Part shown: positions 660 through 47,791 of the stretch, in pieces | How positions within the stretch are numbered: position 1 is the first letter of the stretch | How the letters are laid out: every line of letters starts with the position of its first letter | Notes under the pieces: model-generated | The model's input: the letters and a program-made list of their open reading frames with translations, nothing else | Told to the model about the DNA's origin: nothing | The model's database searches: none | Program-made: the position numbers and the translations under genes | Origin: Macrostomum lignano | Lineage: Eukaryota | Assembly: GCA_002269645.1 (NCBI GenBank) | Contig: NIVC01002460.1 | Span: 62,001-126,000 of the forward strand | Length of the DNA stretch: 64,000 nt | Direction of reading: 5' to 3'

Positions 660-1127
660 ATGTCGCAGCCAAGTTCAGCGGTCATTGTGGAAGGCGAGGC
701 GCCAGAATCGGACGATGAAGAGCAGCAGCTGACTGACTCGCCATCCTCCGATGTCAGTTCAAAGAAATCGACTGCTCCAACTGTTGCAAAAGACGCCGTA
801 GCAACAGAGCACGGGGCGCAGTCTCGGCTGCAGCAGCAGCAGCAAAAGACTAGCCAGCAGGAGCAGCAGCGTCGCTACGCTAGCAGCGCGTTGCACGCCA
901 GATTTTTTCAAGACGCCGGCAAACTGCAATCCGCGCTGGTTGCTAGGCGAGCGTCAACCTACGAGGCGGCTACTAAAGAGCTGCGCGGAGTTGCTAGCCA
1001 ATTAGCTAAGACGCACGCGTGCATTCAGGACGCCTCGCATGCACTGCGGCTGACTACTAATGATCTATACAAGCTTGACGACCGGCTGCAAGCCCTGACT
1101 AAGACTGACTGGCTGGCTGGCTTGTGA
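660..1127 (+). CDS. BLOC1S3: BLOC-1 complex subunit 3 homologue, intronless, 155 aa
   Basis: ATG-TGA ORF. N-terminal VIVEGEAPESDDEE resembles the BLOC1S3 VVxGEAxETDxE motif; the C-terminal coiled coil (SALHARF...ASHALRLTTNDLYKLDDRL) resembles the BLOC1S3 C-terminal domain (recalled similarity). Confidence 0.72.
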   Translation: MSQPSSAVIVEGEAPESDDEEQQLTDSPSSDVSSKKSTAPTVAKDAVATEHGAQSRLQQQQQKTSQQEQQRRYASSALHARFFQDAGKLQSALVARRASTYEAATKELRGVASQLAKTHACIQDASHALRLTTNDLYKLDDRLQALTKTDWLAGL

Positions 1128-1464: not shown

Positions 1465-2190
1465 CAGCAACCCAACAACAGACTAGGGGATAGAGCGACT
1501 CCCTAGCAATAGACTGAGGGATAGAGAGGCCCCCTCTACAACAGACTGAGGGATAGAGAGGCCCCCTCTACAACAGACTGGGGGTAGAGAGGCCCCTCTA
1601 CAACAGACTGGGGGTAGAGAGGCCTCTCTACAACTGACTGGGGGGGTAGAGAGGCCCCTCTACAACAGGCTGGGGGGTAGAGAGGCCCCTCTACAACAGA
1701 CTGGGGGGTAGAGAGGCCCCTCTACAACAGACTGGGGGGTAGAGAGGCCCCTCTACAACAGACTGGGGGGTAGAGAGGCCCCTCAACAACAGGCTAGGGG
1801 TAGAGAGGCCCCTCTACAACAGACTGGGGGGTAGAGAGGCCCCTCAACAACAGGCTAGGGGTAGAGAGGCCCCCTCTAGAACAGACTGTGGGATAGAGAG
1901 GCCCCCTCTAGACCAGACTGGGGATAGAGAGGCCCCCTCTATAATGGATAGAGAGGCCCCCTCTATAATGGATAGAGAGGCCCCCTCTACAACAGACTGG
2001 GGGGTAGAGAGGCCCCTCTACAACGGACTGGGGGTAGAGAGGACCCCTCTACAACAGGCTGGGGGATAGAGAGGCCCCTCTACAACTGGCTGGGGGATAG
2101 AGGCCCCTCAACAACAGGCTGGGGGATAAAGGGCCCCTCAACAACAGACTGGGGGGTAGAGAGACCCCCTCAACAACAGGCTGGGGATAG
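1465..2190. repeat. Minisatellite, ~31-33-bp unit ctctacaacagactgggggtagagaggccc
   Basis: About 20 imperfect copies between BLOC1S3 and COQ2; each contains the self-complementary tagag..ctcta motif. Confidence 0.9.
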
Positions 2191-2258
2191 AGCGGCTACC
2201 CAAAAACATTTTTAAGTTATTGAAATTGCAACTTCATTAACCCCATGGATTTCTTCTG

Positions 2259-2908
2259 TTGTCCAAAGCCACAGCTCGATTTGGTAGCAGCCTTGCCGCT
2301 ACCGCGCGCTCAGTTGCTGGTCATAGGCTGAGTACCAACTGCTTATTGTTGCGTCAGTCATTTTCGCCGGCGCTTTGTAGGCGATGGGTAGCAACGGAGC
2401 CGGCAATTTTCTCGTCCACCGCAGCGTCAGTTTACACGGTTGCTAGGCGACAGAAACACACAGATTTGCGCCCGCCAAAGCCAACAATTGCTTATCGACT
2501 AGTGGCCTCAGCGCCAGCCGGTCTGCAACCTTACCTGAGACTGGCTCGATTAGATAGGCCTATTGGCACCTGGCTATTGTACCTGCCTTGCGCTTGGAGC
2601 ATCACCTTGGCAACTCCGGCTGGCCTGCTGCCAGATCCGCTTGTGCTGGGCCTGTTCGGCTGCGGCGCCCTGCTGATGCGAGGCGCCGGCTGTACTATGA
2701 ATGACATTTTAGATAGGTGAGCCGGACAGAGAGTAGGGGAAGGAGAAGAAAAAGGAGATGAGAGATGAGAGGCGAGATGAGAGGAGGGAGGAGAGGAGAA
2801 AAGAAAGGAGAAAAGCGAAGAATGGAAAGTGGAGAGGAGAGAAGAAAATATAGATAAGAGGATAGAGGAGAGAAGAGAAAAGATAGATAAGAGGAGAGAA
2901 GAGAAGAA

Positions 2909-2962
<54 letters not shown>

Positions 2963-5900
2963 AGGAAAGGGGATAAAAGAGAAGAAAGGAGAGAGATGAG
3001 AGGAGAAAAGAAAGGAGAAGAGAGGAGAGAAAAAAGAACAGAGAAGGAAGAAGGGAGGAGAGAAGAGAAGAAAAGAGAGAGAGATGGGAGGAGAGGGGAT
3101 AGGAGCGAAGAAAGGAGAGAGAAGAAAAGAGAGGAAAAGAGAGAGATGAGAGGAGAAGGGAGAGAGAAGAGATATAGAGCTGTGAAGAGAAGCGGGATTA
3201 GTATTGTGAAGTTTCAAGAACCCAAGGGGCTGCATAGTGAGGCTTCGCGGCCGCATGCTGTAACATTGCTGCTATTAGTATTGGCCAGTGCTGAACAACT
3301 AAAGTTGGGACACTCTTAACCAAAGCATGCTACTAATAGTATTGAAAATTGAATGTCTCTCCTACTCAGGGATTATGACAAGCGCGTAGAACGCACCGAG
3401 GACCGGCCGATACCTTCAGGCCAGGTGACTGTGCCCCGAGCTACAGCCTTCCTAATTGGCCAATCGCTGCTGGCCGCTTGCGTTCTGTTCCAATTCGACT
3501 GGTTCACCGTCGGTTTGGGCGTCGCTTCGCTCGGCTTAGTTGCCACTTATCCGCTGTTTAAACGGTTCACTTATTGGCCTCAGGCGGCGTTGGGTATGCC
3601 TAATTTATCGGTTTCATTTCTTCTTAATTATCTTCTAATTTATAAAAGAAAGCCCTGGCACTATTGAAAAGTCGCTGCTAGTAAGCTACTTTTCTCGGAT
3701 CTCCCTTGCAAGTTGCTCAACTCTGCGTAACCAGAAAATAGAATGAATCAAATGAGGTTTTACCATAGACTCAGGGGTCGGCAAACTTTTTATCTTAATG
3801 GCCAGATAAAGAATCTCGACCATTACTGTGGGCCAGATGAGAAAGGAAAAATGAATGGATAGAGAGAGAAGAGAAAAAAATGAGAGATGCGATGAGAGAA
3901 GATGAGACGAGAGAGGAGAGAGGAGAGGAGAGAAAAGAGAGGAGGGGAGAGAGGACTGAGAAGAAAAACAAACTTTGAGCGGGCCAGATTGCTATTTTGA
4001 AGTTTCAGAGGACCCAGGCCGGGAGTTTGCCGTCCCCCTGCCATAGACAACAGACCATTGCACTACTGCGGTATGGAGTGAGGATCGTTCTTAGTTAGAT
4101 AAAGAGGCAAGGGACTGTGTACACCCTGACATTGTCACACAACCGGTGAGAGGCATTGCTGCTCATTCCGCCAACTCCCCTGAGCAGGCACACAAGCGCG
4201 CGGATACGTACGCAGTCATACGCACAGGCACACACTCACACAGGAGTGTACAGCGGCCCCTGACTTTATTTATCATTAGGCATGTACACTTCACTGTGCC
4301 TTGGGGGTTGGCCCTCAAGGCCGTTAATTGCACGATCAGAGCCAAGCCGAGACTTCAATTTAGCCCCAAATTAATGTGACTGCACTTGGAATCGAGCCTG
4401 GGCCGCTGACACGTCAGAGCGCCGCGCTAGACCGCTGGGTAGATCAAGGAAACAAAAAAATAGCAAGGCCTGTCATTAACTAAAGTTCACTAAATAGTTG
4501 AACTTCTGCTGCTGTAGTGCGATGAAACCTCACTGCTAGGTGTCTATCTAGTACTTATCTCCAAAAAACTTACCTTGCGCGTCGCAGGAGTTACACTCAA
4601 CTTCGGCATTCTGATTGGTTACTCAGCTATTCAAGCTCACTGTGATTGGCCAGTAGTGTTGCCACTGTACGGAGCGGCTATCCTGTGGACTATGATTTAT
4701 GACACAATCTATTCGCATCAAGTATGAATTTCTAATATTGTACACAATACTTAACAACCTTATCTACGAGTGCCTCTGTTGTGTGCGTTTTTTTCTAGAG
4801 TTTTTTTAACTCCCAATAGGACACCTACAGTTGCGTTTAGCTCCTAGCTGCATAGCAACTAGATTTAGTTATTGTTGTATCCTGTTGTTTAACACTGTCA
4901 AGCCAGTTACCATGGGCCATTGTGGGACACTTTTTGTTTCTTAGGAAACTTTTTAAGGCTGTGTTCTATATTCCATACAAGTTGATTCTCATATTGTTGG
5001 ACTTTCTGCCAAACTTTGCTAACGGAAAAGCAAAAAAAACTATTGAATGTAAATATTCTGCACAGTCTACTATTGTGGTGAAGGTTTCAATAGATAAGCA
5101 TCGCATTTTAATGATATAATATATAATTGTCGATAGGTTGTAGCCTAACGGTTAGAGTGTCGAACTCATTACTGAAAAGTCCGGGGTTCGATTCTCAACC
5201 CACTCGAAACAATTTGTGTCCTTTAGCAAGACACTTAACTCTGCATTGCTTCAGTTCACCCAGCTGTAAAATGGGTGCCAGCATTAGCTGGGGTAATTGA
5301 GGGTGTGTGTGCCGACCCCCCCCCCCCCCAGTCCTTGGACTGGACAGCCGTATTACCAAAAGCTCCTGTATGTTACAATATATCTTTGAAGAATCTTTTT
5401 CAAGCATTTCTGGAACAACAAGCCTTTAAGAAGTTTTCTAAGAAAATGTAGTGCCCACTCTGTACTTCTACTTGTAGTAGTTCTTAAAATGCTTGCGCGC
5501 CGATGTGTTCACTTATATTGACGCACATAAACTTTAGGATTGCTAAATACCTACTTACAGTAATCAACCAGGTAGTTGTCTTGCATTTTTGAAAATGTTT
5601 TGTAAACATCTATATGAAATATGAAAGCTATTTCTTACTTAGTAGCAGCATCGAGTATTTAATTAGTTTTTCTTCGCGTTTTTGTGGCGCTCCAGCTCCC
5701 AGTTCTGTCACCTGTTGTGTGGAGCGATCAGGCTTTCATATTCTATTTGGATAGCTTCTCTCTGGATATCACAGTGAGCTGAGTAGCCTCAAATCTCTGA
5801 AATGAGCTTGAGAGTTAACTATAATAATGGAACTGCATTTATTCACAGTATCGTTCAACATAAACATGTTGTTTTATTAAAGAACATTTTCAACTCTTTC

Positions 5901-6853
5901 ACAGGCTTCACATTTAACTATGGGGCTCTGCTAGGCTATGCAGCACTAACAGGCACTATCGACTTGTCCGTTTGCCTGCCCCTGTATGCTGCCGGCTTTT
6001 GCTGGACAATGGTCTATGACACCATCTATGCTCACCAGGTGACCGAACTGGGAACTTGGAGAGATTTCTACTTTATCCAGTTATTTTTTTATATTATACT
6101 AATCATTTTATGTTATAATCTTATTTTTTACAAATTATATCGAATTTAAAGCTTTATTTTTCATATTTTCTACTTAGAGTAGGCTATTCAGCTTTGGAAA
6201 CATTGATTTCGCAAAACAATCAATATAGGAATGGCACTATGCTTGTGCGTATAATGGATTACACTAATTACAAAGGAATATTATAGTTGTGTTGTATTTA
6301 TTGTTTTATTTTTATTTGCAGCTGTTTAATTATGATTTATCACCAGGCTTTGTTGCGCATGAAGTGGCTTCTAACGCACGTTTTAACGCCCTTTCAAAAA
6401 CCAAAGTGCTTATTTTGCTTTTCATCACCTTACTAACAGTAGTTTTAACTACCGAAATATTTTGTACTTTAATTGATTGTGCTATGTAAATTGTAGGACA
6501 AGGAGGACGATCTCATAGTTGGCGTTAAGTCTACCGCTTTGCTGTTTGGCGACGCGACAAAGTCCTGGCTGACCGGCTTCACTCTGGGCATGTCGCTGCT
6601 TCTTGCCACGGCTGGCGCCAACGCAAACTGCGGCCTGTTTTATCACGCCGGCGCGCTGTACGCCTCGCTGCACCTTGCCCAGCAGGTGGCCAGCGTTCAG
6701 TTGGACAATCCGGCCGACTGCTTGGCCAAGTTCAAGTCCAATAGGAATCTGGGATTGGCCTTCTGGCTGGCTATCGTGCTGGACAACTTCTTTGGCCTGC
6801 CCGTGCCCGGCTTTGGGGGCGGCTTTGAGGAGTCTCTGTTTGCTGATGACTGA
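2259..6853 (+). CDS. COQ2: 4-hydroxybenzoate polyprenyltransferase, mitochondrial. Exons: ~2259/2358-2716, 3370-3593, [4588-4721 OR 5905-6038], 6497-6853
   Basis: UbiA motifs: [60 protein letters not shown](A/S)[17 protein letters not shown]. All junctions are GT-AG and in phase. The start codon is uncertain (no in-frame ATG upstream of the first conserved motif). Confidence 0.95.
2725..3175. repeat. Purine-rich (GA)n/low-complexity tract in COQ2 intron 1
   Basis: A/G-only stretch including a perfect (GA)n run at ~2910-2957. Confidence 0.9.
3771..4040. mobile_element. Non-autonomous hAT (Charlie-like) MITE with purine-rich core
   Basis: Termini caggggtcggcaaact ... agtttgccgtccccctg; 8-bp direct repeat ccatagac at 3763-3770 and 4041-4048. 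Confidence 0.75.
4588..4721 (+). CDS. COQ2: COQ2 alternative exon, rhodoquinone-type (coq-2e-like): [45 protein letters not shown]
   Basis: Flanked by cgcag| and |gtatga; 134 nt, phase 1 to phase 0; not in the ORF track; Leu codon 4596-4598 and Ser codon 4713-4715. Confidence 0.92.
5135..5352 (+). mobile_element. tRNA-derived SINE with CORE-like body, between the two COQ2 alternative exons
   Basis: A-box-like tagcctaacggttagag and B box ggttcgattc; body gtgtcctt.agcaagacacttaactct...cagctgtaaaatggg; second copy at 30108-30314. Confidence 0.8.
5905..6038 (+). CDS. COQ2: COQ2 alternative exon, ubiquinone-type (coq-2a-like): [45 protein letters not shown]
   Basis: Flanked by ctctttcacag| and |gtgacc; 134 nt, phase 1 to phase 0; Phe codon 5913-5915 and Ala codon 6030-6032. 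Confidence 0.93.
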
Positions 6854-7204
6854 GTGTGTCTGTCTGTATTTTCAAGGCTTTCGCTAGACCGAGTTTTGTT
6901 ATAGCTTAGACTTCATGGCTCTTATCAAATTTTGAGCTTTTTAGCATTTCGATTCTATGTTTGGTAATGTAGTTGCAACTATGTTGTGTGAGTTTTATCC
7001 TCGTATGAATTTACAATACTGTTAAACCAAACGTGTTGATTTTAGATGTACCATCACATGGTTAAATGCATCTTTTATATCGCTTTTTTAAGCAAAGTTA
7101 ATGTTAGATTTTAGACGAAAAAATTTCAGCTGTAGCTAAAATGATTTAGAAGTCGTTTTCAATCTTCTTTTTATTTACGAGCGTACATGCTTCTTTATCT
7201 ATTG

Positions 7205-7550
7205 GCGCACCCACCTCACTCCACCACTGCCCCGTGGGCTGTACATTTGTGCACCCACCTCACTCCGCCAATCTATCCCTTTGGCTGTAAAATAGCGCAC
7301 CCACCTCACTCTGTCACTCTCTAACCTAAGCTGTACATTAGTACACCCACCTCACTCCGCCACGGCCCCGTTGGCTGTTCATTTGCGCCCCAAATCACTC
7401 CGCCACTCTGTCCCCTAGGCTGTATAATAACGCACCCACCTCACTCCGCCTCTCTGTCCCCTAGGCTGTACATTAGCTTACCCACCCCACTCCGGCACTC
7501 TGTCCCCTAGACTGTACATTAGCTTACCCACCTCACTCTGCCTCTCTCTC
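7205..7550. repeat. Minisatellite, ~42-bp unit gcacccacctcactccgccactctgtcccctaggctgtacatt
   Basis: About 8 degenerate copies; the same family recurs at 9955-10322 and 11097-11412. Confidence 0.8.
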
Positions 7551-7878
7551 CCAGATTTCAGGTTGGTAAGCTCACCCTTTTTGCCTAAGTCGTTTACTTC
7601 CTACATTGAAATCATTTTTTTACTTGCATGAAAATCACTTTTACAAAATAGTTTTAGCTTGTTCAGGCAAAATTATTGTTTCAAACGAAGCAAACCAGAT
7701 CAATAAAGTTCAGACGCTGTCATGCAACAGCTAGGCAAGGAAACATCTGCTGCTCTTGCTACTACTGGCAGTGCCACCTCGACGGCAACAGCGGCCGCTT
7801 CATGACTGTTCGATCCAGTGTCAACTCCAGCTGCTAGTCTAACTTAATCGCAGTTTAATAACTGATCGGATTAGCGCG

Positions 7879-41329: not shown

Positions 41330-42648
41330 CGAGGGGTGATCAAAAAGTTCTGCAACCTTTTGTTATAGCTTTTAGTTATAGAATTGGGAAAAGCCAAAAA
41401 CTTACACATATGCAGCTGTATCTGTTTGCTATATTTATATGCATTTTTGGCTTCCAAATGTGCTCCAGTAAAATTTCACAGCCATATATTTTCCATGTGT
41501 TTTCAGTAGCTGATGGAAACAACAAAAGACAGTGTTCGCTTCTATATCTTTATGTGCATGCAACTTGGTTGCAAAGTGACTGAGATTCACACCGATCTGG
41601 TGAATGTTTTAGCTGACTCTGCTCCATCATTTGACATGGTTGCCCGCTGGCTGCACCATTTCTTGGAAGGCTGGGACAGCTTCAACGATGAACCGAGGTC
41701 TGGCTAACCCCGGACATCCGTGACCGAAGATGTCGTGGCCCATGCCGATGCAATAATTCGTGAGGATTGGAGCATTATGCTAAGATTCATTGCCTATGAG
41801 CTTGGTGTCAGCTGTGGAAGTGCTCATAACATCATGCATGAGCAACTAGGCCGCACAAAGACCTGCGCTCGGTGGGTACCCCATCTTCTCACTCCGGAGC
41901 AGCAAGCAGAGAGGGTGCGCATCTGTCGCTTGTGGCTGCAAATTTTTGAGCCCCACGGCCCACGACGACTGTCGGATGTCATCACAGGGGACGAATGTTG
42001 GATCTCCTTCTTTTACCATGAAGGATAAGCAGTCCAACATGGTCTGGCTGGCAGAAGATGAGCCAAGGCCTGAGGTGCTGAAGACCGGATTCCGCAGTCG
42101 GAAGCGGATGTTCACCATTTTTTTCAACTCTCAGGGTGTTGTATCGGTAAACATCCTTCCAGCGGGTGCCACAGTGACTGCCAGGTACTACACAGACACT
42201 GTTCTGCCAGGCGTGCTGCAGGAGCGGCAGGAACGTGCGCGAACCAGGCATGGACCTCGACTCCTGCTGCACCATGACAATGCGGCACCGCACAGAGCGG
42301 CCTCAACCATGACATACCTAGAGCAGCAGGGGGTCCGGCTGCTGCCCCATCCACCCTACTCTCTAGACCTAGCACCTTGCGACTTTTGGCTGTTCCCGAG
42401 GATCAAATCCATCATTTCTGGGAGGCCATTTTCACGCATGCAAGACCTTGCCCAAGCGGTACATTCAGCTCTACAGGGCATACCAACTTCGGAGTACCAG
42501 GACTGCTTTCAGACATGGTGCACACGGATGCGACGGTGCATAGATAGTGGTGGAAAGTACTTTTAGGGAATGTGACACTGATTAGATGCCTTGGCTGCTG
42601 TAGCACAGAGTTGTGAAGTCACTTGCAGAACTTTTTGATCACCCCTCG
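41330..42648 (+). mobile_element. Full-length (1,319 bp) mariner transposon, inactive
   Basis: TIR cgaggggtgatcaaaaagttctgcaa and its exact complement; TA duplications; transposase motifs WVPHLL, TGDE, HHDNA and PYSLDLAPCDFWLFP (DD34D). Confidence 0.95.
41513..42566 (+). pseudogene. Mariner transposase pseudogene
   Basis: In-frame TAA at 41705-41707 after DEPRSG, a frameshift near the T run at ~42010, and YSPDL changed to YSLDL. Confidence 0.9.
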
Positions 42649-46210: not shown

Positions 46211-47791
46211 TTACACTCTCGGTTCCATCACCAGCTGATAGTTCTTTGGCGACCAGACCAGGCCGTCGGAGCCCTCCATCAGCCTGGCGACATACTCCGG
46301 GGTCACGTCGCCCGCCAGACGAAATCGGTAGCGTCGAATGAGCTCGACAGTCACCAGAGTGATCTGCAGCTCGGCCAGGCGCTCTCCCGGACACGAGCGC
46401 GGCCCGACAGAGAACGGGATGACCTCAGCCGGCTTCTTGAACTGGCCGCCGGGTCCGGTGAGGAACCTGGCCGGATCGAACTGGTCTGGCGCAGCGCCGA
46501 ATACTGTCGAACTGCGCAGGGCCTCGCGCAGATTGGGGAAGACCCATGCGCCTGCTGGCACCCGGTAGCCTAGCACCACAATGTCCTCCTTGGCGCAGTG
46601 ATTTATGGCTGTAGGCAGCGGCGGATGAAGTCGCAGCACCTCGGTGATCAGAGCGCGCAGGCCCGGAGCTTCTTGGCAATCGGCAGCAGTGAGCGCACTG
46701 AGCTCCTTGAACAGCTCATCCTGGTAGTCTCCATTCCGATGAGTTGCCAAGTAGAGGAAGATCCACTTCAGACAGCTCGACGTCGTGTCAGTTGCTCCGA
46801 TGAGAAGGTCAAAGATGGTCACGGCCAGGCCGCTGTCGCTGTAGTTCTCCATGCTGGCCAGCTCCGCGCTGTTCACAGCCGTCTCAACGAAGAATGTCGC
46901 ATCGCCGCAGCCGCTGTTGGAGAGCTGATTAGCCTGACGAATCTGGTCCTCGATGAAGCTTAACAACAGTTTGATGCTGCGCTGGGCCGCTCGAGTCTTC
47001 TTCACCAGGTAGAAGAGCAAGTTGGGAAATGCCATCAGGTAGGGCAGCAGGACGGATGTGGCGAAGGAGGAGTAGATATCCTTCTGCACAATGGTTTGCA
47101 CAGCCTCGAGTCTGCTGGTGAAATTCTGATTGTCGGAGGCGCGCTGACCGAAAATGATGCGGAACACGATGTTGGCGGTGATGCGGGTGAACAGCTCGCT
47201 GGGGACTGGCTCCCCGGGAACCTGTTCCTCCAGGCTCAGCTGCAGCTCCTCGTGCATCAAGGACTCCAGGTTGCCCCGATGCGAGCGAATCTGCGATATG
47301 AACCGGTGCACAAACTGCCGCTGCTTCCTCCAGGCCGGGCCCTCGCCCAGGGCCAGTCCGTTGCCATTGAACAGCTTCTTGGACCACAGCCCCTGCGGCC
47401 GGCCCGACAGCGCCTCGCCGTGCTCCTTCAGCGCGTCAATGGCTTTCAAACTGTTCAATGAGACCCAGCAGTTGCCGGCTAGTTGGAAGACGAATATTTC
47501 GCCGTACAGGCGCGCACCTTCGGGCAGCCAGCGTCGGTACGGCAGCTGCATGAATGGGTAGGAGCCGACAACTGGCAGACTGGGAGGTCCGGGCAGCTCC
47601 CGTCCCGCCGGCCTGTCTGTCGCAGATTCCTCAGCAATCGATTTGCGTTTCTGTCGAAGTTTTCGACGCAGTTTGGACGCCGTGCAGCCGGCCGCGGTGA
47701 GCAGAATGGTGGAGACGAGCAGAATTTTGAGTAGGGCGATGGCTGAATCGGCTAATAACAGGTCGTACGGGTGCACGTTGAGCTGGTCCAT
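46211..47791 (-). CDS. Cytochrome P450, CYP2 clan, intronless, 526 aa
   Basis: N-terminal TM anchor, PGPPSLPVVG hinge, WxxxR (WRKQR), I-helix GATDTT, ExxR (EVLR), FDPARF, and heme motif FSVGPRSCPGE. Confidence 0.95.
   Translation of the reverse strand: MDQLNVHPYDLLLADSAIALLKILLVSTILLTAAGCTASKLRRKLRQKRKSIAEESATDRPAGRELPGPPSLPVVGSYPFMQLPYRRWLPEGARLYGEIFVFQLAGNCWVSLNSLKAIDALKEHGEALSGRPQGLWSKKLFNGNGLALGEGPAWRKQRQFVHRFISQIRSHRGNLESLMHEELQLSLEEQVPGEPVPSELFTRITANIVFRIIFGQRASDNQNFTSRLEAVQTIVQKDIYSSFATSVLLPYLMAFPNLLFYLVKKTRAAQRSIKLLLSFIEDQIRQANQLSNSGCGDATFFVETAVNSAELASMENYSDSGLAVTIFDLLIGATDTTSSCLKWIFLYLATHRNGDYQDELFKELSALTAADCQEAPGLRALITEVLRLHPPLPTAINHCAKEDIVVLGYRVPAGAWVFPNLREALRSSTVFGAAPDQFDPARFLTGPGGQFKKPAEVIPFSVGPRSCPGERLAELQITLVTVELIRRYRFRLAGDVTPEYVARLMEGSDGLVWSPKNYQLVMEPRV

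Follow-up and report, generated by a model that had tools for sequence, protein, structure and literature searches.

The DNA studied here, a 64,000-nucleotide (nt) stretch of the flatworm Macrostomum lignano (contig NIVC01002460.1, positions 62,001 to 126,000 of the forward strand; hereafter the window, whose numbering is used throughout), contains a COQ2 gene with a pair of homologous internal exons, exon E and exon A, either of which completes the reading frame. We think it likely that this gene is the M. lignano orthologue of coq-2/COQ2 with the conserved mutually exclusive a/e exon pair and that exon E, by homology, leads to rhodoquinone; there is good support for equating the pair with the coq-2 a/e switch described by Tan et al. 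(2020). An earlier note on this DNA, which rightly thought of a Macrostomum-like flatworm, had recognized the pair, and that identity is upheld: the gene encodes a PF01040 protein, and the Leu/Ser and Phe/Ala residues of the two exons fall in the same alignment columns as those of e and a forms from other phyla. By analogy with the published case, a substrate switch, rhodoquinone production, hypoxia-tolerant mitochondria, and control of exon choice by oxygen are plausible for this animal.

The COQ2 gene and its alternative exons

The COQ2 exons were joined by hand from the plus strand, between positions 3000 and 8000 with the addition of the upstream first exon (Table 1). The locus belongs to assembly GCA_002269645.1 (Mlig_3_7), and over the 16,853 bases compared, the window and scaffold NIVC01002460.1 agree without a difference. 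Spliced in this way, the e isoform shows 100% identity, from end to end, to the GenBank protein PAA57658.1 (BOX15_Mlig002721g3, partial), whose coding sequence begins at 2295 in the GenBank record. This protein carries the Pfam domain PF01040 (UbiA), and its next best matches are vertebrate 4-hydroxybenzoate polyprenyltransferases, at 54-58% identity and 89-100% query coverage. Together with the presence of both Asp-rich motifs, the first of which (NDxxDxxxD) spans the junction of the first coding exon with exon 2, the domain and the vertebrate identity mark the host gene as a COQ2/UbiA orthologue.

The splice sites read cgcAG/GA...CAA/GTatga for exon E and cacAG/GC...CAG/GTgacc for exon A, where slashes mark the exon borders. 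In each case, the first two bases of the exon finish the Gly codon opened by G3593, and the exon ends at a codon boundary. Exon E encodes T-L-N...Y-S-H-Q and exon A encodes T-F-N...Y-A-H-Q, with the two diagnostic sites 39 residues apart. The two exons, separated by an intron of 1183 nt, are identical at 25 of 45 residues and 77 of 134 bases and find each other in reciprocal tblastn searches with an E-value of 8e-15; no third copy of either was found by tblastn in the 64-kb window. Either exon alone, joined to 3593 and 6497, gives a COQ2 frame that is open to 6853. The inclusion of both exons, or of neither, shifts the frame and leads to premature stops because 134 is not a multiple of 3. The re-spliced exons and the tblastn comparison agree throughout with the coordinates, phases, motifs, and junctions (3593-4588, 4721-6497, 3593-5905, and 6038-6497) that the earlier note had proposed.

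In Caenorhabditis elegans, exons 6a and 6e are both 134 nt long, and the replacements of Phe by Leu and Ala by Ser (L204 and S243) are invariant in the e exons surveyed, at positions that adjoin the substrates (Tan et al. 2020, eLife 9:e56376). The pair L204;S243 of C. elegans stands against F;A in Homo sapiens (PMC10136121 Table 1). In 115 of the 120 best COQ2 homologues, the same motif contains F...A with a spacing of exactly 39 residues; L...S is confined to the M. lignano protein. The two diagnostic columns of a MAFFT alignment of 272 COQ2 sequences, which include 150 cluster representatives from an exhaustive search, hold Phe/Ala in 225 sequences and Leu/Ser in three: the M. lignano protein, Aplysia californica isoform X2, and the e-form of the nematode Soboliphyme baturini. 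It is these Phe/Ala columns that L219 and S258 of PAA57658.1 occupy. In a HMMER alignment to the UbiA of Aeropyrum pernix (4OD4/4OD5), Ser258 lies three residues ahead of the second Asp-rich motif, DKEDD; among solved structures, a sequence match was obtained only to this archaeal UbiA. We regard the Leu/Ser and Phe/Ala sites of M. lignano as equivalent to C. elegans L204/S243 through this transitive chain of alignments, and the placement of Leu/Ser at 204 and 243 in the earlier note is borne out by the shared columns taken with the published table.

Exon use, selection, and proposed function

The Mlig_3_7 annotation was built from RNA sequencing (RNA-seq) only (sets SRP082513 and SRR2682326), using a genome-guided StringTie/TACO assembly merged with a de novo transcriptome; transcripts were split at trans-splice and poly(A) sites that had been mapped by experiment, and open reading frames were called with TransDecoder (PMC5730564). 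The sole GenBank model at the COQ2 locus of the window, PAA57658.1, includes exon E and skips exon A. Both junctions of exon E were therefore assembled from reads, and the possibility, raised with the earlier note, that no reads include 4588-4721 does not hold. The annotation used a TACO isoform fraction of 0.75, by which isoforms below 0.75 of the major one were dropped (PMC5730564), which suggests that the exon E isoform is not a minor one. The other choice is seen in the UniProt model A0A1I8GS08, which belongs to another gene copy, is fused to SMG1, uses exon A, and skips exon E. The e-only and the a-only model, one of each, are gene models, not read counts.

A paralogous BLOC1S3-COQ2-SMG1 locus, located via the neighbouring BLOC1S3 (P0276), lies on contig NIVC01002758.1 (L003 11700-16260). 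Its COQ2 annotation is only a 112-residue fragment corresponding to the last exon, and exons E and A are both intact there. The introns of the two copies differ by 2.8-10.5% mismatches and many indels. Exon E differs at 2 of 134 positions, one change being synonymous and the other Val to Ile, with Leu, Ser, and both splice sites kept, and exon A differs at 4 of 134 positions, all synonymous. Over the whole coding sequence, we count 13 synonymous and 3 conservative nonsynonymous changes for the e form and 16 synonymous and 2 nonsynonymous changes for the a form. The intron flanks of exon E, up to about 250 nt on either side (4350-4950), show 0-3 differences per 100 nt between the paralogues; strong conservation of flanking introns is typical of regulated alternative exons. 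Of the 25 residues common to exons E and A within the window, 15 use different codons, and the third base is the same in only 9 of the 22 degenerate ones. The different codons used for shared residues therefore argue that the E/A duplication is old and that both exons have been constrained to keep their protein sequence. Everything in these comparisons points to purifying selection on exons E and A and to both being functional in both gene copies, as judged by a sequence-based test of modest power.

In the mechanism that we propose, COQ2 would be the mitochondrial polyprenyltransferase that starts quinone synthesis, and exons E and A would supply alternative versions of one 45-residue stretch reaching the second Asp-rich active-site motif. 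With exon A (Phe/Ala), the product would be the pan-eukaryotic enzyme that prenylates 4-hydroxybenzoate towards ubiquinone. Exon E (Leu/Ser) would reshape the aromatic-substrate pocket, and 3-hydroxyanthranilate from the kynurenine pathway would be prenylated to yield rhodoquinone, by homology with C. elegans COQ-2e. C. elegans from which exon 6e has been deleted makes no rhodoquinone (Tan et al. 2020). Under scarce oxygen, rhodoquinone would be the low-potential carrier that fumarate reduction requires. Exclusivity would be enforced at least by the reading frame, with nonsense-mediated decay presumably clearing transcripts that contain both exons or neither. M. lignano is an intertidal sand dweller for which acute hypoxia responses have been described (PMC5043416), and this ecology and these responses fit a rhodoquinone switch. 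Within the 64-kb window, no TDO/IDO, KMO, or kynureninase gene is present.

Several points weigh against this reading. The usage of exon A rests on the gene model A0A1I8GS08, and the equivalence with L204/S243 rests on a transitive alignment and a published table. Even in C. elegans, the substrate switch was argued from genetics and never shown with purified enzyme (Tan et al. 2020). Searches of the literature turned up no measurement of rhodoquinone in M. lignano, nor any RNA-seq under hypoxia or counts of junction reads for it. Exon E is 40-51% identical to the e exons of other phyla versus 56-58% to their a exons; because it is no closer to e exons than to a exons, common descent of the e exon is not shown. 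Annotated or predicted e-type exons of other animals depart from Leu/Ser, with Q/S in Helobdella, S/S in Dirofilaria, and L/A in Bradybaena. Lastly, no in-frame ATG is present in the COQ2 gene of the window between the stop at 2238-2240 and the catalytic domain.

The missing start codon bears on an explanation that concerns the gene copy and not the organism, namely, that the window copy is a decaying paralogue that is transcribed and not properly translated, the working switch being that on NIVC01002758.1. We consider this unlikely, although it deserves to be kept in mind. The paralogue has TTTCTTCAG/TTG TCC (L003 11750-11800), and the window has CTG in place of CAG at that point (2256-2258), so the candidate acceptor is missing there. 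Use of the paralogue acceptor would bring the AUG that ends the spliced leader CGGTCTCTTACTGCGAAGACTCAATTTATTGCATG in frame to give MLSKATARF..., a plausible mitochondrial presequence; a spliced-leader AUG is known as an initiator in flatworms. Because its start codon is missing, the window copy may be poorly translated, and the marking of the GenBank protein as partial agrees with this; alternatively, the base may be an assembly error. Decay is opposed by the 13:3 ratio of synonymous to nonsynonymous changes between the copies, with all replacements conservative, and by the lack of a frameshift or stop in any exon. The transcript model, moreover, is placed on the window copy, whereas the other locus has only the fragment model. 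The acceptor itself was inferred from the sequence alone, and a single-base assembly error or a CUG start is possible.

It is also conceivable that both exons are used and that the E isoform has a role different from initiating rhodoquinone synthesis, through another substrate preference, a tissue-specific role in ubiquinone synthesis, or altered kinetics. The variation among the e-type exons of rhodoquinone-making phyla, the overall nearness of exon E to a-type as much as to e-type exons, and the genetic rather than biochemical case for substrate specificity would all allow this, and rhodoquinone has been reported in taxa without coq2 splice variants. Against these stand the restriction of the Leu/Ser pair to annotated e-forms among the 272 aligned sequences, the loss of rhodoquinone on deletion of exon 6e, and the production of rhodoquinone by flatworms including planarians; we judge such another role to be quite improbable. 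That exon E is a relic duplicate spliced in as noise, with the functional enzyme always using exon A, is a very remote prospect: its G+C content (0.45) is below that of exon A (0.51) and the constitutive COQ2 exons (0.57-0.59), but its frame is intact and its splice sites are canonical, it keeps all the catalytic-region residues shared with other COQ2 proteins despite near-saturated synonymous sites relative to exon A, it and its intron flanks are nearly unchanged in the paralogue with Leu and Ser retained, and the single RNA-seq-derived GenBank model uses it in place of exon A after the isoform filter.

Comparison with known coq-2 exon pairs

The coq-2 gene of C. elegans resembles that of M. 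lignano in several ways: a pair of mutually exclusive internal exons of 134 nt each, the e exon coming first; Leu/Ser in the e exon and Phe/Ala in the a exon at sites spaced by 39 residues, close ahead of the second Asp-rich motif; and the same frame logic. The two animals belong to different phyla, and the intron between the e and a exons is 678 nt in C. elegans (Supplementary file 3 coordinates) versus 1183 nt in M. lignano. The C. elegans switch is backed by genetics and quinone measurements, whereas that of M. lignano is known from sequence and gene models.

The e exon lies upstream of the a exon in all 17 species listed by Tan et al. (2020, Supplementary file 3), and both exons are 134 nt long in C. 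elegans and in the flatworms Fasciola hepatica, Schistosoma mansoni, and Schmidtea mediterranea in the same file. M. lignano matches the flatworm pattern exactly, with e upstream and lengths of 134 and 134 nt. A close published parallel is SMESG000018280 of the free-living flatworm Schmidtea mediterranea, with the same order and exon lengths; Schmidtea belongs to the Tricladida and has a 5.5-kb intron between its e and a exons, whereas M. lignano belongs to the early-branching Macrostomorpha, the comparison being one of published coordinates. In M. lignano, there are two paralogous loci, each of which retains the E/A pair. Planarians contain RQ9, as detected by high-performance liquid chromatography (Shiobara et al. 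2015, PMC4635435), and flatworms as a phylum make rhodoquinone, free-living planarians included (Tan et al. 2020; PMC4635435).

For further comparison, the COQ2 loci of Helobdella robusta, Aplysia californica, Dirofilaria immitis, and Bradybaena similaris were fetched. All four have an e-type exon followed by an a-type exon, and the boundaries, G-x-T-x-N ... Y-x-x-Q, fall at the same codons as in M. lignano. The e exons are 131 nt long, one codon shorter than in M. lignano, and the a exons are 134 nt long (131 nt in Helobdella). Isoform X1 of Aplysia COQ2 is the a form and isoform X2 is the e form, with Leu/Ser as in M. lignano; the a exons of the four loci all encode Phe/Ala. Because the leech, filarial, and land-snail e-type exons deviate, the two-residue Leu/Ser rule is less absolute than stated, which matters where these two residues serve as a genomic marker of rhodoquinone capacity. 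As side observations, the gene models of Helobdella and Dirofilaria COQ2 wrongly run through both exons, and a JGI metagenome protein (P0110) also has Gln/Ser instead of Leu/Ser. A more distant comparison is with the RquA pathway of bacteria and protists, which shares the end product, rhodoquinone for fumarate respiration. RquA works by adding an amino group to completed ubiquinone and has no relationship with COQ2 splicing; nothing at the M. lignano locus resembles it.

No relevant paper linking Macrostomum with rhodoquinone was found in the literature searched. The earlier note knew of no description of the switch for a free-living Macrostomum-like flatworm; its occurrence in a free-living flatworm is not new, given the listing of Schmidtea in 2020 and planarian RQ9 in 2015, but the genus and the order Macrostomorpha appear to be. 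Because the Schmidtea exons and planarian RQ9 are already published, the present gene is best described as a new species example of a described switch. Its modest contribution is to place the switch in a lineage of flatworms that branched early, in a host open to genetic work, and at two paralogous loci, both of which retain it. The coq-2 a/e switch is thereby extended to Macrostomorpha, among the earliest-branching rhabditophoran flatworms. The presence of the exon pair in Macrostomorpha, in Schmidtea, and in parasitic flatworms suggests that it is older than the rhabditophoran radiation and was not gained with parasitism. Being a small, transparent, regenerating animal in which transgenesis works, M. 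lignano is a possible harmless, free-living model for the regulation of the rhodoquinone switch and for inhibitors against helminth COQ-2e.

A candidate RNA stem and other features of the window

The strongest local RNA pairing in the COQ2 pre-mRNA, S1, joins a segment of the intron between exons E and A with the donor of exon A. Of the 24 positions of its core, 21 form Watson-Crick pairs; in a 1571-nt fold, 5697-5714 pairs with 6036-6053 at base-pair probabilities of 0.92-0.97, and the fold of 5680-6070 has a z-score of -3.7. The S1 core is unchanged in the NIVC01002758.1 paralogue. The exon A donor window ranks at 0.6-0.9% of background in both M. lignano copies versus 12-39% in Helobdella, Aplysia, Dirofilaria, and Bradybaena; S1 as a mechanism conserved across phyla was rejected, the donor window being unremarkable in these four species. 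The chance significance of S1 is modest, since an inverted repeat of at least 21/24 arises in 6 of 100 dinucleotide shuffles, and other windows come near its duplex energy.

We offer purely as a hypothesis from the predicted fold that S1, if formed, would make the exon A donor inaccessible and tilt the choice towards exon E. A lineage-specific S1 that loops out exon A and partly sets the a/e choice, making E the default even in normoxic culture, is in our estimate improbable. Such a default would fit the finding that exon E is in the only isoform kept in the RNA-seq-derived annotation. No paper on the regulation of coq-2 exon choice in any species was found in the literature searched; if true, S1 would be the first cis-acting mechanism for this choice, in a flatworm in which transgenesis is possible.

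About 50 nt from an S1 arm lies an inverted exon-E-like fragment (Table 1), which reads GYSA..HCD. The fragment may have been left behind by a duplication of the exon in inverted orientation, or it may be a pairing element maintained by selection. Its pairing with exon E (S2) was rejected at a base-pair probability of about 0.02 in the 1.57-kb fold. A third, inverted copy of the exon was likewise rejected, since the MAFFT similarity is limited to two short blocks and tblastn finds no third copy.

Table 1. Positions of the COQ2 exons, candidate elements, and other features of the window, followed by e-type exons of other species that depart from Leu/Ser
Feature	Position	Strand	Description
COQ2 first coding exon	2241..2716	+	Frame open after stop 2238-2240; donor AG/GTgagc; ends ...NDILD-R
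COQ2 constitutive exon before the alternative pair	3370..3593	+	Ends ...YWPQAALG; G3593 is base 1 of a split Gly codon
Exon E (e-type, rhodoquinone signature)	4588..4721	+	134 nt; residue 4 is Leu (CTC), residue 43 is Ser (TCG)
Exon A (a-type, ubiquinone signature)	5905..6038	+	134 nt; residue 4 is Phe, residue 43 is Ala
COQ2 last coding exon	6497..6853	+	Second Asp-rich motif at start; stop codon 6851-6853
S1 5' arm, candidate regulatory element	5691..5714	+	In the E-A intron, ~200 nt before exon A
S1 3' arm	6036..6060	+	Last 3 nt of exon A, GT donor, 20 nt of intron (CAG/GUGACCGAACUGGGAAC...)
Inverted exon-E-like fragment	5768..5790	-	Reverse complement GGCTACTCAGCT/CACTGTGAT matches 4617-4628 and 4638-4646, 20/21, with a 9-nt gap
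BLOC1S3	660-1127	+	Same strand, 1.1 kb upstream of COQ2
31-nt tandem repeat	1475-2196		ACAACAGACTGGGGGGTAGAGAGGCCCCTCT; ~23 copies filling the BLOC1S3-COQ2 spacer
Purine-rich GA/GGA microsatellite tracts	2755-3172, 3835-3964		Introns 1 and 2; each then followed by a similar unit (...tattgtgaagtttcaagaacccaagggg / ...tattttgaagtttcagaggacccaggcc)
tRNA-like stretch	5135-5215		tagcctaacggttag ... ggttcgattctc, similar to boxes A and B; in the E-A intron
46-nt tandem repeat	7201-7552		...GCACCCACCTCACTCCGCC...; ~8 copies, spacer from COQ2 stop to SMG1
SMG1 kinase gene	~7860 to beyond 24451	+	SMG1 and PI3_PI4_kinase domains; 3794 residues annotated; downstream of COQ2
Mariner-type transposase fragment	41946-42566	+	PF01359
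Cytochrome P450 open reading frame	46211-47791	-	526 residues; apparently intronless
Helobdella robusta e-type exon	L004 5452-5582		Q/S; annotated or predicted
Dirofilaria immitis e-type exon	L006 4564-4694		S/S; annotated or predicted
Bradybaena similaris e-type exon	L007 32479-32609		L/A; annotated or predicted

The place of BLOC1S3 upstream on the same strand and the transcriptional-unit prefix Mlig002721, which its paralogous copy shares with COQ2, suggest that BLOC1S3 and COQ2 form a polycistronic unit. ARAGORN and Rfam searches detected no RNA genes in the window, the tRNA-like stretch between exons E and A included; this stretch could be a tRNA-derived short interspersed nuclear element. 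The purine-rich tracts of introns 1 and 2, together with the units that follow them, are probably remnants of a repeat element, and the tracts are the most diverged parts between the two paralogues.

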